This document shows positions 3,218 through 42,331 of a stretch of DNA of 64,000 nucleotides, piece by piece. Each line of letters begins with the position of its first letter. The stretch's first letter is position 1. The notes under the pieces were generated by a model that ran no database searches, had not been told where the DNA came from, and was given only the letters and a program-made list of their open reading frames with translations. Position numbers and translations under genes: made by a program. Source of the DNA: Paraphysomonas bandaiensis (taxonomy: Eukaryota > Protista > Chrysophyceae); the NCBI GenBank assembly GCA_965644295.1, contig CBFFRP010000125.1, positions 124,001 to 188,000 of the forward strand, read 5' to 3'.

Positions 3218-6200
3218 ATGCAAGTTTCAGACCGAGAAGCATTGCTTGAGAAGAAGCAAGCATTAGAGAGTCAACTGCATGATCTCATTGGCCCCCCTCT
3301 ACCTTCTAAAGGGAAGTTTTCATCAACGAAGAGAGAAGCTCACTGGGATCATGTTTTAAAAGAGCTGGTGAGTGAATTTGACCTACTTTGTACTGTTGAC
3401 TCTTTCTTGTAGGTGTGGCTTGCAAATGATTTCTCAAAAGAGAGACTGCGACACAAGTCTGCAGCAAAGAAGCTGAGTAAGGCAGTGGATGCATATCATA
3501 GCACAAAGGAAATAAGAATTGCTAAGAAAATTAAGGTAAAGCCTAGACTACATGAATGCTTCGGTTTTAACTTGTCTGAATACTTGCTCAGGATGATTTG
3601 GTACAGAACAAACGTACTGCAGCCAAGATTGCGAGAGAAGTATCAAAGTTCTGGTTAAAAATTAACAAAGTTGTGACCTTTAAGCAGAAAGGAGAAGCAG
3701 ATGAAGCCAGACAAAAGGTTTTCGTACACGAGATGTATTTATTGTCTGTGCTGTGTTTCTTCTGATTGTAAATATAGAATCCATTTTCTGATATTTGTGA
3801 TACCAGGCAATGGATAAGCATTTGGTTTTCTTAGTGAAGCAAACCGAGCGCTACACACGTATGCTGGTGTCGAACATGGAGCAAGGAGGTTCACTTGGAC
3901 TAAATATACAGCGTGCAGGGTCGCCACGTCCTCCGAGTGCTTCTAAGAAACGACGATTACTAACCGATAGGGCCGGTCAAGAAGAGTGCAGCCACAGTGG
4001 AAGCCCTTCTATGAGAACACCCAAGCACATGCATGATAATGCAAGTGGTTTTGAAGATGATGCACTAGATATTGCATTCAATGATGATAGCGATGCTAGC
4101 AGTGGAGAATTCGAGTTTGAGAATGAGCCGGATGATGAGAGTACTCTTATAGAAGCAGAAGATCACGAGGCTTCGGAAGGAGCTGACAAGGAGGCCGAGA
4201 TAGCAATGCTTAAGAATGAGTCGGAGATTCCAATTGAGCAATTACGGGCCATGTACGGTGGTATGGAGGGTGCTAGTGCTAGTGATAGCAATGCTGAAGG
4301 CGGGAGTGACAGTGAGGAAGATATGAGTCTGAGTGGTAGGCGTCGGACTCGAGTAACGGGTGCGGGTAGCAGCTCCTCTGTGGGTGATGTTGATGGTGGA
4401 ATGATTAGTGATGATAGCGATGCTAGCAGTGGAGAATTCGAGTTTGAGAATGAGCCGGATGATGAGAGTACTCTTATAGAAGCAGAAGATCACGAGGCTT
4501 CGGAAGGAGCTGACAAGGAGGCCGAGATAGCAATGCTTAAGAATGAGTCGGAGATTCCAATTGAGCAATTACGGGCCATGTACGGTGGTATGGAGGGTGC
4601 TAGTGCTAGTGATAGCAATGCTGAAGGCGGGAGTGACAGTGAGGAAGATATGAGTCTGAGTGGTAGGCGTCGGACTCGAGTAACGGGTGCGGGTAGCAGC
4701 TCCTCTGTGGGTGATGTTGATGGTGGAATGATTAGTGATGATAGCGATGCTAGCAGTGGAGAATTCGAGTTTGAGAATGAGCCGGATGATGAGAGTACTC
4801 TTATAGAAGCAGAAGATCACGAGGCTTCGGAAGGAGCTGACAAGGAGGCCGAGATAGCAATGCTTAAGAATGAGTCGGAGATTCCAATTGAGCAATTACG
4901 GGCCATGTACGGTGGTATGGAGGGTGCTAGTGCTAGTGATAGCAATGCTGAAGGCGGGAGTGACAGTGAGGAAGATATGAGTCTGAGTGGTAGGCGCCGG
5001 ACTCGAGTAACGGGTGCGGGTAGCAGCTCCTCTGTGGGTGATGTTGATGGTGGAATGATTAGTGATGATAGCGATGCTAGCAGTGGAGAATTCGAGTTTG
5101 AGAATGAGCCGGATGATGAGAGTACTCTTATAGAAGCAGAAGATCACGAGGCTTCGGAAGGAGCTGACAAGGAGGCCGAGATAGCAATGCTTAAGAATGA
5201 GTCGGAGATTCCAATTGAGCAATTACGGGCCATGTACGGTGGTATGGAGGGTGCTAGTGCTAGTGATAGCAATGCTGAAGGCGGGAGTGACAGTGAGGAA
5301 GATATGAGTCTGAGTGGTAGGCGCCGGACTCGAGTAACGGGTGCGGGTAGCAGCTCCTCTGTGGGTGATGTTGATGGTGGAATGATTAGTGATGATAGCG
5401 ATGCTAGCAGTGGAGAATTCGAGTTTGAGAATGAGCCGGATGATGAGAGTACTCTTATAGAAGCAGAAGATCACGAGGCTTCGGAAGGAGCTGATAAGGA
5501 GGCCGAGATAGCAATGCTTAAGAATGAGTCGGAGATTCCAATTGAGCAATTACGGGCCATGTACGGTGGTATGGAGGGTGCTAGTGATAGTGAGAGTGAC
5601 TCTAGAAGTCATTGTGATGTGATGGAGTTAGATAATAGTGATCGTGAGTTTGAAACGAAGAAGAAAGTTGCGAGGCGTAAGCGGTCATCAGTTGATGTGT
5701 CTGCTATAGATGAAGGGCAGAATGGTGTAGATGGCGCTCTTCAGAGACTTGAGAATGCAGACAAAGAAGCTCGTTCTGTTCATGTCAGTGTTTTGTTTGT
5801 GTAATGGCTTGACTATACTGATGTTCATATATATTCAGGTTGATCTTCCGTTCATACTATCGAGCCGATTATCCTTGCGAGAGTACCAGCATATCGGCCT
5901 CAACTGGTTAGTATCCCTTCATGAACGTAGACTCAATGGTATCCTAGCTGACGAGATGGGGCTTGTGAGTACTTAATCTTAGAAATGCATTGTACTTACA
6001 CTGCTGGCAGGGGAAGGCTCAACCTTACGACTGTAAAGTGCTAACACCAACTGGGTGGCGGGAGATTGGATCTCTGTCTGTTGGTGAACGCGTTGTCGGT
6101 CGGGATGGGTGTTCTACTACAGTAACAGGGGTCTATCCCAGAGGAATCAGACAGACATACCGTGTAGAGTTCGATGATGGGTTCGGTGTTGAGGTATCCG

Positions 6201-9200
6201 ATGATCACCTTTGGCAGGTATACGATCCCTCAGTAGGATCCACTGTGCTTTCCACCAAGCAAATTGTCAGTGGAGGTAGTGTCACGCGCTGGTATATACC
6301 TTTGGTCGAGCCTGTGATTTACGAATGCTTGAACGTTAAGCTGGATGTTGACCCGTATGTTGCTGGTGTTCTTGTCCAGTGCGGTAGCATTAATAGTGGC
6401 AAAGCGTCTTTTATAGTTCATAAGCATGATAAACACCACTTCTGGAGCCAGTTGTCAAAATATCATGAGAGTCATGTCAATATCTCTTGTAATGAGAATA
6501 CTGATATGGTGACTATTGAATGCTCTGGACTGAACTGGGGAGATGTTGACGGTGTGTCTGAAAGTAATAATATGCGCGTTGTGAAAGGCATACGTCGGAA
6601 GTATCTGCAGAGTTCCGTTGCAGATCGCACAAACCTCCTTCAAGGTGTATGTGATGTTGCCGGATACACGGACATTCATGGTGATGTTATAGTGGTGACA
6701 TCAGCTTCTATTGCCAGTGATATTGTCGAGTTGGTGCAGTCTCTGGGGGGGGTAGCCAGGTTACTAACAACATCTGAAGGGTCTGTTCAAATCACACTGC
6801 GAATGCCTGTCGATATATGTCCCTATTTTTTGTCCAGAAAGGCACAGGAGTTTGTAAAAGTAGCACCTCGCTGCAAGCCCTCGAGATATATCAAATCGAT
6901 TTCACCTATGCGAATGACCGATGTTATGTGCATTTCTGTGGATGCTTCAGACCATTTATACGTTACTGAGCACTTCATTGTGACGCATAACACTATACAG
7001 GTGGGAGTGTAGTTGGTATTAGAATGAAAAATAACTCAACAGTTGTATTAGACTATAGCTTTATTGGCATATTTGGCGACATTTCGTGGTCTCTGGGGAC
7101 CCCATCTCATTGTTGTGCCCACAAGTTGTTTAATAAATTGGGAAATTGAGTTCAAACGATGGTATAGTTTGCAGCGCATATGTCTAATTTGATGCAGTGA
7201 CGTATACGTTTACGACAGGTGTCCAGCATTCAAAGTTCTCACTTACTATGGCTCCCAAAAAACTAGAAAAGCGCTTCGCACGGGATGGTCGAAGCTAAAC
7301 TCCTTTCACATTTGCATCACATCCTATCAAGTAGTGGTGCAGGATTCATCGTCGTTCAGGAGAAAACGGTGGTACTACATGATATTGGACGAAGCTCACA
7401 ATATCAAGGTGATGTGGATTTTGCAGTTGTAATAACTAACGCTTTCGTGTTTACAGAATTTTAAATCTCAACGATGGCAAACATTGTTGAATTATAATAC
7501 TCAGAGACGCTTGCTCTTGACTGGAACTCCCCTGCAGAACAATCTGATGGAGCTTTGGTCGTTGATGCATTTTCTCATGCCCCATATATTTCGATCAAGA
7601 AAGGTCTGTATGAAACGAGTACGCTCCGTGGTGTTATGTTTCTTATGTAGGAATTTTCATATTGGTTCAATAATCCACTTAGTGGCATGGTTGAAGGTAA
7701 CCGAGGCATTAATAACGACATCATATCTCGTCTGCATGGCATTATGCGACCCTTTCTGCTCAGAAGACTCAAAAAGGACGTAGCGAAGCAGCTACCTCCT
7801 AAGTACGAGCATGTAGTAATGTGCAAGCTTTCCAAGCGACAGGCCTTTTTGTACGAAGAGTTCATGTCGCGGTCGTCAACCAGGGCACTTATGAGTGGCG
7901 GCAACTACATGGGGATGATGAATATACTGATGCAATTAAGAAAGGTTAACTTCCACAAAACTGTTCGTCTGATATTTTAAACCTTCACACAGGTCTGCAA
8001 CCATCCAGATTTGTTTGAGCCTCGCCCAATAGTCTCCCCATTTAGAATAGAAAGCCTTCAGTATAAAGTAAGCTCTCTTACCTTTTGTCCGGAAGTTCTG
8101 GATTTCAACTGTACATTGGGAAATCTTTCTATGTTCGAATATGACCACTTTGCAAGAACGAATATATATGAGTTATCTGCGTCATCTATACCACGTGTTG
8201 AGATAGATGATGTGAATATGGATATAGATGTCCCTACCGCTCTCAGGCATGTCAAATATCGTGCATTCGTGGATGCTTACACGAATCGAATAAAAAATGA
8301 AGTAAACTTCAGGTTGAAGCGAAACACCGATATATCATCTAGACGGTGTGATATGATAAATTGCTCACTTTCATATAACTGGAGAGTGGAAAGGGCTTGC
8401 AATATTGGGCCAAGTGTCGTAGAAAAGGCTTTTCTAAGCAGGAAAAATAGTCTTATTGCTCGGGATACCCCATTGTGTTGGAGGAGGCTCGTTCGAACTT
8501 CACACGAAAGAGCGGCAGACATGTACGATGTGGTGTCTAGGTTTGTGTTTGTGCTCCCAAAGGCCATCAGCGACGGTCCCCAGATAGTGCTTAGCAGAAT
8601 TTCCTCAAGAATGATAGCACCAGTTATTCAAAGAACCCTGATCGATGTAGACTCTCCTTTGAGAAAAAAAATACAAGCAGACCTCAATGTATATTACGCC
8701 TCATACATTCGTCAACGAATATATTTTCCTGATAGAAAATTAGTTCAGTTTGACAGCGGGAAGTTGCAGGCGCTTTGTGTGCTCCTGAGGCGTCTCAAGA
8801 AGGGTGGACATAAGTGTCTTATATTTACTCAAATGTCAAAAATGTTAGACATATTGGAAATATTTTTAAATTTACATGGGCACACCTATGTCCGTCTTGA
8901 TGGGTCGACTGGCGTTGAGAAGAGACAGCGTCTCATGGATCGGTTCAACACGGACCCTAAGTTGTTTTGCTTTATACTGTCTACTCGAAGCGGAGGCTTG
9001 GGAATAAATTTAACTGGAGCTGACTCGGTTATATTCTATGACAGTGACTGGAATCCTGCGATGGATGCTCAGGCGCAAGATCGAGCGCACCGCATAGGCC
9101 AGACCCGTGAAGTTCATATCTATCGCCTTGTGTGCCGTAGCACAGTTGAAGAAAACATTCTCACCAAAGCACGGCAAAAGAGGCACCTAGATTTTCTGGT

Positions 9201-11283
9201 CATGTCTGAGGGAGATTTCGACGTGGGATCGCTCTTTTCTGCTGGTAATCTTATGGATCTACTCGGGAATGGTGACTCGTCATCATCAGTTACATCTAAA
9301 TTAACGAAATCTCGTGGTACAATGGAGCAACGCCGAGAAATGGAAATGAACGTAGACGTGATTGATGTTGAAGCTGCTATGGCGGCTGTAGAGGACGAAG
9401 AGGACGTGACTGCAATGAAAGGCGCGAAGGCAGAAGCAGCAGAGGAAGCTGCAGAGTTTGACGAAAGTTCTAGTGTACCACAACTCCCTGAGGATGCGGA
9501 TGAAAAAGAAAGCAGTGCATTAGTGTCTCAAAAGTCAGTGAGCAAGGAAGATGACATGGAGGAAGAATTCGCTTCATGGCAGGCTTCAGTTGGCGCGAAG
9601 GACTTCGGAGCGCTGGAGGCAGCACTGAAGCCAGTTGAGCGATACGCACTTAATTTCCGAACTGTGATTGACCCCTACTACTCCCTGCACTACCTGTCCG
9701 AACAGCAGCGCTTAGATGAAATGCAGGCCGACGAAGCCTCCCAGGTATACTTGTTTCATGCGTTCTTGTCATGCTTTTGTGACAGTTGCGTCAGGGGTGG
9801 GATATCGAGACCATTGAAAAGGAAAAAGAAGAAGAGGAGTACAGAGCACTCGCTGATGGTGAACTGCTAGCTGTGAATCTTACTCGTCGAGAACTGTCCC
9901 GAGTTAAGTCTCTCTATTTGCAAGAGAAGTCCAAGCGACGTAAAGCTCGGAAACTTCGGCAGCTAACAGGGGAGGGATGGGTGCATTATATTGATGATCT
10001 TACAGGAACACCTTTCTGGTACAATGAAGATACTGGCGAAGCATCATATGGACAGCCTGATATTATCAAGCAGAGAGAAGTCCTCAAGGCCGCTATGGAA
10101 AGAAAGTACAATGCATTTCCTCTACCGCTCATCCTCAAGGTTCTATCGTATCTGGACCCTTATCCTGATAGAATTCGTTGCTCGTATGTATGTGCTAGGT
10201 GGAAGAAGGCGGCTTTCGACGAATCTTTCTACAAAACTGTGTTGTCGATTGAGTCAGGGGCACGAGATATATCTACTGTTGGGGGAAGTTCCTCTCAGGC
10301 TGATCTTGGAGATAATACTTTTACTTCTATTTCAGACGCTCTCGCCGCTGCTAAGCCTGGCGACACGATATCCCTGGGAAATGGTCATCATTGGGAGCCC
10401 TGCCTATTGTTTGACAAGCCTGTTAGGATTATAGGATCTGAGGATGACCCATCAAGAGTATGTGTGGAGGTTGCAGATGGAGTAGAGGTAGTACCAAAGG
10501 CGGGAAAGGTGGCCCTTATTGGCATCACGCTGATGCGGTCTCGACGAAATGCAATGCCGAAATCATTATTCACTGCTAAGGGCGTTACAGTTAGCGTAAG
10601 TTATATACTTCTGTATGTAATACGAACTTATAGATATCTTCAGATGATATCCTGTGTACTCAATAATGACAATGCGCCTGGAAGTTGTTTGTACTTAGAG
10701 AGCGGCGCAGAACTTAATATGCATAGCTGCACTGTTCAGGGGGGGAAAAGAGCGGGAATCACACTCCTCAATTCTTTGGTTACAGCCTTCTACACGAAGG
10801 TAATGTACTTAAATTATTATGTTGTGGGCTAACTTCGCTTCTCAGATTCACTTGAACGACGGTGCTGCAATATCTTGTGTAGGCAGTGCAGTGGTACTCG
10901 AAGATAGCCGTGTTATTCATAACTCTACTGCTGCACGGTGTAGCTTCAACAGTGCATGCTCAATGTCGTACTGCGACATCAAGGACAATAGCAGTAAGCC
11001 TGTTGCAGCTGATTTTAGCTCAACATTTTACAGTGGGAATTGCTCGGGAGATGTCAATGCGCTTGCTGAATTCAACTCCCGGGTTGTTGAGGTCTTGGGA
11101 GATGGGAGTGGTGTACCTCATGGAGAAAGCTTGCCAAGTGAAAAGGAATGCGTAAATGATAGAACTGATAGGAAAAAACGTGAGCATGGTTTTCTTGGAG
11201 ATAGTCCTGAGGACTGTGTGTTGAAGAAGGCACGCACAGATCATACAATAGACGATAGTGTTAGCTATTACTCTGAGGAATAG
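3218..11283 (+). CDS. SWR1: SWR1/SRCAP/PIE1-type Snf2 ATPase (multi-exon) with HSA domain, intein, and C-terminal WW/F-box/beta-helix extension
   Basis: HSA ([20 protein letters not shown]); [27 protein letters not shown]; ILDEAHNIK; [24 protein letters not shown]; split ATPase with insert; [15 protein letters not shown]; [25 protein letters not shown]. Exons join in frame through short GT-AG introns. Confidence 0.93.
4082..5586 (+). repeat. Coding tandem repeat, 327-bp unit x ~4.6 (109-aa acidic unit) inside SWR1
   Basis: Units start at 4082, 4409, 4736, 5063 and 5390. Near-identical, with synonymous variants CGT/CGC (copies 1-2 vs 3-4) and GAC/GAT (copy 5). Confidence 0.97.
6017..6991 (+). 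mobile_element. Class 3-type intein (325 aa) with degenerate LAGLIDADG homing endonuclease, inserted in SWR1 Walker A
   Basis: GK|[14 protein letters not shown] (block A); SDDHLW (block B); [12 protein letters not shown] and [10 protein letters not shown] (decayed LAGLIDADG motifs); VMCISVD..HLYVT (block F); IVTHN|T (block G). Removing it restores DEMGLGKTIQ. Confidence 0.95.
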
Positions 11284-12220
11284 TTACTAGATACAAATTT
11301 CCTAGAATAGCTGCAAATAGTTATCAACAACTGACGTAAAAAATATATGGACTACGTAATTTTGTGAATAGCTAATCAATTTTTAAGTAAACAGAAGAAG
11401 AATTCGTTGTAGAATAGTGAATCACTAGAATAACAAGAAACCATCATATTTAGTAGTTAATTTCTTATTGTTAGCAATAGACGTTTATCCCCATTTTGTC
11501 TCAAAAAATGCTTTTTTTGACCTGATTTGGGCTCAACAGGGCGCTCATATCAGCACCGGGCAAATATAGACATTCAACTTCAATATTCGGTTGAACAGAA
11601 GCTCACTTCTATCTTTATTATGATAATGACAGTCGCATGTACGTGATTTTATTATAGTACACAATTATAGAGAAACCACAATCATGAGCCAAATATCAAG
11701 AGCAGATCATCTAACACTCCAGGTTATATTCCATCTTTCGACTGCTGTATAAGTTCACAACGATGTCAGTGCAAGTGATCTGTCTTCATATCCAGGACTT
11801 CGAAACAACTTCAAGAATATTACAGGAGAGTTTAAGTACCATATCTGATGCTATATAGGTGGTTAGGGGCAGTGGCACCCAGTTCTTTCAGGGTTGGAGC
11901 CATATCATGCTTCTCAGGATATTGTGTGTCTCATATCATACACACATCCTTCGATAAGGTGCACTTGCAGAGGTAAAGCCTGCTGTATATAAATGTGATG
12001 ATGATGCTAATTAAGGCAATAAAAAGCCTCTCTTTCATCTTCAACTGTTTACATTTATCATCACACTTACAGTATACATATCATTCATTTGAAACTATAT
12101 GAGTTCTCATTTGTGTTATTAATGTTAATCAAGGAACATCTATTTCTTAGTACAGCAAGCATGCTACAAATAGCTATACAATCTAATATTAACTTTTCAA
12201 CGTCATGAGGATAAGCTACA

Positions 12221-41417: not shown

Positions 41418-42331
41418 TGTATGTATGTATGTATGTATGTATGTATGTATGTATGTATGTATGTATGTATGTATGTATGTATGTATGTATGTATGTATGT
41501 ATGTATGTATGTATGTATGTATGTATGTATGTATGTATGTATGTATGTATGTATGTATGTATGTATGTATGTATGTATGTATGTATGTATGTATGTATGT
41601 ATGTATGTATGTATGTATGTATGTATGTATGTATGTATGTATGTATGTATGTATGTATGTATGTATGTATGTATGTATGTATGTATGTATGTATGTATGT
41701 ATGTATGTATGTATGTATGTATGTATGTATGTATGTATGTATGTATGTATGTATGTATGTATGTATGTATGTATGTATGTATGTATGTATGTATGTATGT
41801 ATGTATGTATGTATGTATGTATGTATGTATGTATGTATGTATGTATGTATGTATGTATGTATGTATGTATGTATGTATGTATGTATGTATGTATGTATGT
41901 ATGTATGTATGTATGTATGTATGTATGTATGTATGTATGTATGTATGTATGTATGTATGTATGTATGTATGTATGTATGTATGTATGTATGTATGTATGT
42001 ATGTATGTATGTATGTATGTATGTATGTATGTATGTATGTATGTATGTATGTATGTATGTATGTATGTATGTATGTATGTATGTATGTATGTATGTATGT
42101 ATGTATGTATGTATGTATGTATGTATGTATGTATGTATGTATGTATGTATGTATGTATGTATGTATGTATGTATGTATGTATGTATGTATGTATGTATGT
42201 ATGTATGTATGTATGTATGTATGTATGTATGTATGTATGTATGTATGTATGTATGTATGTATGTATGTATGTATGTATGTATGTATGTATGTATGTATGT
42301 ATGTATGTATGTATGTATGTATGTATGTATG
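41418..42331. repeat. Perfect (TGTA)n microsatellite, ~914 bp
   Basis: Uninterrupted tetranucleotide run, about 228 units. Confidence 0.99.

Follow-up and report, generated by a model that had tools for sequence, protein, structure and literature searches.

A class 3 intein in the Walker A motif of a SWR1/SRCAP chromatin-remodeller gene from the chrysophyte Paraphysomonas bandaiensis

The stretch of DNA analyzed here, which we call the window, comprises 64,000 nucleotides of the marine protist Paraphysomonas bandaiensis (GenBank assembly GCA_965644295.1, contig CBFFRP010000125.1, positions 124,001 to 188,000). It contains a gene for a chromatin remodeller of the SWR1/SRCAP type whose Walker A motif is interrupted, between its Lys and Thr codons, by an in-frame insert of 975 nt (window 6017-6991; 325 codons, no stop). 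The encoded insert begins with AQPYDCK and ends with VTHN, and the residue that follows is a threonine. In host order, the codons for DEMGL end at 5964 and are followed by an intron, an exon holding GK, the insert and TIQ, and a second intron, after which the host continues with TIALL. A preliminary description of this locus had the insert splitting DEMGLGK from TIQ, which is correct for the protein; in the DNA, the motif is also split by the two flanking introns.

We matched the host to reference proteins exon by exon. In a search of the PDB, the host exons on both sides of the insert match SRCAP (E 1e-85), Swr1 (E 1e-77) and INO80 (E 1e-55). The combination of an HSA domain on the 5' side with an SNF2 ATPase that bears a long insertion and is nearer to Swr1/SRCAP than to INO80 upholds the earlier assignment of the host as a nuclear SWR1. 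Downstream of the insert lie Helicase_C, a weak WW match and an F-box, and the same domain set occurs in orthologues that carry the insert. The C-terminus of the host (window 9786-11305), with its WW-like segment, F-box and further tail, is unlike that of yeast or human SWR1; an F-box in this position is common to related orthologues. Duplicated acidic units resembling the tandem repeat at 4082-5593 are also present in two SWR1 orthologues that lack the insert (L132 and L196). We detected one SWR1/SRCAP copy in the genome, and its orthology suggests that the protein would exchange H2A.Z. The HSP90 of the genome is 98% identical to an MMETSP transcript, 87% to that of Paraphysomonas imperforata and 85% to that of Chlorochromonas danica; this single gene is in line with a Paraphysomonas-related chrysophyte, and no named match that was resolved came from a diatom. 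The coordinates of these features are collected in Table 1.

Table 1. Features of the SWR1/SRCAP locus and the related inteins elsewhere in the genome (window coordinates unless a contig is named; filled, intein present)
Feature	Position	Strand	Remarks
Host SWR1/SRCAP gene	3218..11305	+	ends approximate; HSA, acidic repeats, split SNF2 ATPase, Helicase_C, WW-like, F-box, C-terminal tail
HSA-domain exon of host	3413..3535	+	E 3e-8
327-nt tandem repeat encoding the host acidic region	4082..5593	+	4.6 copies at 99% identity
Phase-0 GT-AG intron, 6 nt 5' of insertion point	5965..6010	+	same position in 7/7 filled SWR1 loci
990-nt exon: Gly-Lys, intein, Thr-Ile-Gln	6011..7000	+	five host codons only
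Class 3 intein, 325 aa	6017..6991	+	Hint domain plus central degenerate LAGLIDADG endonuclease domain
Ala1	6017..6019	+	N-terminal nucleophile absent
Block B: His64 (B10), Trp66 (B12)	6206..6214	+	Trp66 at 6212-6214; Ser61 is B7; from aligned inteins
LAGLIDADG block C remnant	6350..6385	+	catalytic Asp replaced by Cys122; from alignment
LAGLIDADG block E remnant	6638..6664	+	catalytic Asp replaced by Ala215; from alignment
Block F Cys305 (F4)	6929..6931	+	putative first nucleophile; from alignment
Block G Thr323-His324-Asn325 plus extein Thr+1	6983..6994	+	Thr323 at 6983-6985, Thr+1 at 6992-6994; from alignment
Phase-0 GT-AG intron, 9 nt 3' of insertion point	7001..7051	+	GT after the TIQ codons in 7/7 filled loci
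SMARCAL1-like gene intein	C123:62144-63214		Ala-His-Pro start; 356 aa
RAD16-like gene intein	C218:324862-325878		Ala start

Signature, alignment and fold confirm that the insert is a class 3 intein. Inteins of this class are defined by a non-nucleophilic residue 1, a Trp at B12, a Cys at F4, a Thr at G5 and a Ser or Thr at position +1 (PMC2807308). Here, position 1 is Ala rather than Cys, Ser or Thr, the Trp-Cys-Thr (WCT) triad is complete with Trp66, Cys305 and Thr323, and the +1 extein residue is Thr. Blocks A, B, F and G of the Hint fold are all recognizable, and the insert terminates in His-Asn. Among 73 aligned inteins, His64, Cys305, Thr323, His324 and Asn325 are present in every one and Trp66 in 72. 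The in-frame insert, its Ala start, its HN-T end and the three residues of the triad thus lie exactly where the preliminary description had placed them, and its class 3 assignment is borne out.

Sequence searches retrieve intein homologues down to E 1e-66, and the insert's sequence matches in the PDB are to the gp41-1 intein and to DnaB inteins of mycobacteria. The AlphaFold model of the intein has a predicted local distance difference test score (pLDDT) of 92 and a predicted template modelling score (pTM) of 0.91. It matches the yeast intein PI-SceI along the intein length with a template modelling (TM) score of 0.73, and its predicted splicing domain matches those of the class 3 DnaB inteins 6BS8 and 6RIX with a TM score of 0.8 normalized to target length. 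In the proposed check with intein profiles, the Pfam and NCBIfam intein models, PF14890 and PF14528 included, score the insert below cut-off or miss it. PF14528 has no match anywhere in the genome; as these models are blank or below cut-off on a real intein, they cannot be used to exclude others here. A chance origin of the insert is rejected by the homologues, by a confident model that matches inteins and by the uninterrupted GLGKT found at most other SWR1-like loci (see below).

The insert is retained in a spliced transcript. A 5,280-nt contig of sequencing run X8 lacks seven GT-AG introns across 5650-8300, keeps 6011-6998 whole and joins the host exons on either side of the insert; we assume from the absence of these seven introns that the run is RNA. 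The contig is 99% identical to the window, differing at 16 places, and the run is labelled with a different organism code; judged by its sequence, the source is a close strain or species. Because the insert begins with GC and ends with AC, neither of which is a splice-site dinucleotide, the spliceosome cannot remove it exactly, and skipping of the 6011-7000 exon would keep the frame and lose the Walker A lysine. The non-canonical ends, together with the spliced contig, led us to reject removal of the insert as an intron. Since the spliced contig retains the insert, removal must occur at the protein level. RNA-level removal, the outcome that the preliminary description had named as fatal to its case, is already refuted for the main transcript.

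In metagenomes and sequencing runs, at least six further protist SWR1 genes with introns carry the same intein at the same site behind the same upstream exon, giving seven filled SWR1 loci with the insertion site and both flanking intron positions in common. In a tree built from a single host exon, the five filled genes for which data were available group together as a clade (Shimodaira-Hasegawa-like approximate likelihood ratio test (SH-aLRT) 96), and the nearest empty genes fall outside it. A further 80 SWR1-like loci, sampled in other organisms, all lack the intein, and 66 of them read through a contiguous GLGKT. The comparison of filled and empty sites that had been called for thus points to a single old invasion followed by vertical inheritance, because the filled hosts are one clade and the relatives outside it are empty.

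The endonuclease domain lacks the acidic residues of an active LAGLIDADG enzyme, with Cys122 and Ala215 in their places in blocks C and E. The block C catalytic Asp is present in 53 of 59 prokaryotic and phage relatives and the block E Asp in 57 of 59, whereas both are absent from all 14 aligned eukaryotic inteins. At block C (window 6380-6382), 8 of these 14 have Cys instead, which may reflect shared ancestry or constraint. Identity among the SWR1 inteins is ~60% in the N-terminal splicing part and 70-80% in the C-terminal part, and falls to ~24% in the endonuclease region. Strain differences number 12 in 988 positions of the intein against 4 in 1311 of the exteins (Fisher p=0.011). On the simplest reading of these sequences, the intein would be an old, immobile, clade-wide resident that invaded once and has since descended vertically while its endonuclease decayed.

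Relatives of the intein occur in 587 records of the phage collections; the best of them, in helicases and terminases, are 33-36% identical to it. Many of the close non-eukaryotic relatives lie on gene-dense, phage-like contigs, in SNF2-like helicases and at the same GLGK-T position, and the nearest relatives outside eukaryotes are phage SNF2-like helicase inteins at this very site, which bears on the origin check of the preliminary description. Its proposal that a prokaryotic or viral-type intein has colonised SWR1 accordingly holds for the phage-type ancestry; the image of a recent colonist does not fit an old element with a dead endonuclease. No giant-virus donor was seen, the viral matches examined all looking phage-like. 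The top profile-search matches, which resembled long eukaryotic proteins, turned out to be multi-intein phage-type proteins with summed scores. Long phage-type proteins (P0054, P0057, P0060 and others) hold several related inteins, some of which start with Pro.

Three related inteins were detected in this genome, in the SWR1, SMARCAL1-like and RAD16-like genes; the Walker A position is the same in each, and their pairwise identities are 36-44%. The RAD16-like intein is interrupted by a 51-nt GT-AG intron between blocks F and G, and a homologue, P0012, stops at this point. In the intein tree, the SWR1, RAD16 and SMARCAL1 inteins of this genome form a clade (SH-aLRT 95-97), with four other SMARCAL1 inteins apart; an approximately unbiased (AU) test against monophyly of the SMARCAL1 inteins gives p=0.04. 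This arrangement suggests, with moderate support, that inteins homed from one paralogue to another in the past and that the SMARCAL1 site was occupied on two separate occasions.

We consider it highly probable that a phage-derived class 3 intein invaded SWR1 once in a chrysophyte-like ancestor, lost its endonuclease, was inherited vertically, and is retained in mRNA and removed by protein splicing. The point of entry would have been the SWR1 Walker A codons, in the ancestor of a chrysophyte-like protist group; the intein would later have lost both endonuclease catalytic residues and passed vertically ever since. The same intein lineage would have reached the matching site of the RAD16-like and SMARCAL1-like paralogues, most simply by past homing. 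In the precursor protein, the insert would hold the Lys and Thr of Walker A 325 residues apart, and a mature SWR1 ATPase would for this reason need splicing. Class 3 splicing proceeds through attack by the block F Cys, transfer of the N-extein, Asn cyclisation and ester rearrangement (PMC2807308, PMC6195587). By this established route, Cys305 would attack the Lys-Ala1 bond, the N-extein would pass to Thr+1, Asn325 would cyclise, and an O-to-N shift of the ester would restore GLGKTIQ. The intein would persist because only an exact deletion would leave the ATPase intact, and for the same reason selection would keep splicing efficient while the endonuclease decays.

Several points weigh against this account. 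Self-excision with extein ligation is predicted here from class 3 chemistry, and at the identities given above no single phage donor is resolved. The intein tree carries SH-aLRT supports only and long branches produced by the decayed endonucleases, and the AU test was picked after the tree had been inspected. The survey of empty sites favours intron-poor genes, and empty alleles within the filled clade could escape it. Retention in mRNA is seen in one contig, which comes from a run under another organism code, and transcript contigs miss rare variants and isoforms.

The rival that survives best, which we nonetheless consider unlikely, is that the intein has been domesticated as a switch, in which splicing that depends on redox state, zinc, temperature or DNA would control the deposition of H2A.Z and perhaps also the two other SNF2 repair ATPases. 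That an essential-type gene has kept the intein for so long although its endonuclease is dead would fit such a role, but the difficulty of exact loss accounts for retention without any benefit. The endonuclease fold is still whole, as the high pLDDT of the model indicates; its sequence, however, is the least conserved part of the intein among orthologues, and, position for position, the intein varies more between strains than the exteins do. Conditional splicing of a class 3 intein has a precedent in Mycobacterium smegmatis DnaBi1 (PMC6195587), yet the disulfide partner Cys48 of that intein aligns with Thr47 here, and this position is Thr or Ile in 13 of 13 aligned eukaryotic inteins, so that a redox trap of the DnaBi1 type is not present. 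The recurrent Cys at the block C Asp position would fit a switch, but Cys6 and Cys32 are unconserved and no non-catalytic Cys of the splicing domain is conserved. The redox- or metal-sensitive switch put forward in the preliminary description finds no support here, and conditional splicing by a route other than the DnaBi1-type trap is possible. A slightly longer shot is that the SWR1, SMARCAL1-like and RAD16-like inteins act together as a shared stress-sensitive switch on H2A.Z deposition and DNA repair.

Much less probable is an element that is still mobile and spreading by homing. Its endonuclease-fold domain is full-length, but both catalytic Asp residues are gone from every aligned eukaryotic member. 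Three paralogues are filled within one genome, but these copies have diverged to the low mutual identities noted above, and any exon-based target is disrupted by the introns that lie 6 nt to one side of the site and 9 nt to the other. Least credible of all is removal at the RNA level or an assembly or contaminant artefact, for which the many short introns around the insert might speak and against which stand the spliced contig that retains it between joined host exons, its non-canonical ends, the same flanking introns around it in each of six independent assemblies of metagenomes or runs, and a GC content at third codon positions (GC3) of 0.42 in the insert against 0.43 in the host.

Introns apparently lie in or beside the Walker A codons of 16 of the 21 SNF2-family motifs in the genome, one of them (L038) exactly at the intein position, and, as read from sequence, in or beside those of 13 of 18 empty SNF2 paralogues. 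Kinesin matches break at the P-loop equally often, ~30 of them starting at profile positions 76-89; the top AAA and DEAD matches are mostly unbroken and are biased to intron-poor genes. Since kinesin P-loops are broken as frequently, the pattern is not intein-specific, and we rejected both co-transfer of the flanking introns with the intein and a specific protective role of Walker A introns against it. Gly-Lys codons resemble a splice donor. Elsewhere in the window, an open reading frame (ORF) at 24661-25605 encodes a Vint-type Hint domain (PF14623, E 3e-18), the second Hint-fold protein in the window. A TGTA microsatellite with 228 perfect copies at 41418-42331 accounts for the stack of overlapping ORFs in that place.

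The closest published parallel is cluster 1 of Anaeramoeba, whose nuclear, apparently class 3 inteins lie in the P-loops of several proteins (Gallot-Lavallee et al. 2023, PMC10710043). That paper also describes inteins in chromodomain SNF2 (CHD-type), SWI2 and HARP/SMARCAL1 remodellers, the transfer of inteins from one paralogue to another and the presence of introns close to insertion sites. The inteins described here resemble that cluster in their nuclear coding, apparent class, P-loop sites, multiple hosts and phage-like N-termini. They differ in that the host organism is a stramenopile rather than a metamonad, that three related inteins were detected rather than 45-103, and that the introns flank the filled site and are common across the clade. 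The main text of that paper does not list SWR1/SRCAP among the hosts, and a literature search covering sources other than subscription papers returned nothing relevant on an intein in SWR1, Paraphysomonas or chrysophytes. The preliminary description knew of no SWR1 intein, and none appears in the literature searched; its treatment of class 3 as atypical for nuclear inteins is overstated, since nuclear P-loop class 3 inteins and SNF2-family hosts are already known (PMC10710043).

Like the class 3 DnaB inteins of MP-Be (PMC2807308) and of M. smegmatis and M. chimaera (DnaBi1; 6BS8, 6RIX), the SWR1 intein combines Ala1, the WCT triad and a His two residues before the Trp with Thr+1, an ATPase P-loop site and a Hint fold, and it shares Ser at B7 with the MP-Be DnaB intein. 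Unlike them, it resides in a eukaryotic nuclear host with spliceosomal introns, and where DnaBi1 is a mini-intein, it keeps a full, catalytically dead LAGLIDADG domain and lacks the Cys48 partner. Phage SNF2-like helicase inteins, such as those of Erythrobacter phage vB_EliS-L02, Vibrio phage 501E54-1 and mycobacteriophages, are 33-36% identical to it over the full length, and many phage inteins of this type share its GLGK-T position; most keep both endonuclease Asp residues, and their context is that of prokaryotic viruses. With PI-SceI, the intein of yeast VMA1, the SWR1 intein shares the two-domain layout of Hint and LAGLIDADG and a nuclear ATPase host, whereas PI-SceI is class 1 (Cys1), has an active endonuclease and is 15% identical to it.

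The kind of element is therefore already known; what is new is the SWR1/SRCAP host and the lineage. If the organism is in culture, class 3 splicing and conditional splicing would be directly testable in a eukaryotic nucleus, and matching transcriptomes exist. The locus offers a clean example of an intein that has outlasted its dead endonuclease across a clade, with traces of spread among ancient SNF2 paralogues. Nuclear class 3 inteins now extend to a second eukaryotic lineage, and to a host for which we found no report, which bears on the question, posed by the Anaeramoeba study, of whether those amoebae are exceptional or the first sign of something widespread. As the standard Pfam and NCBIfam models miss such inteins, more of them are likely to be hidden in protist genomes.

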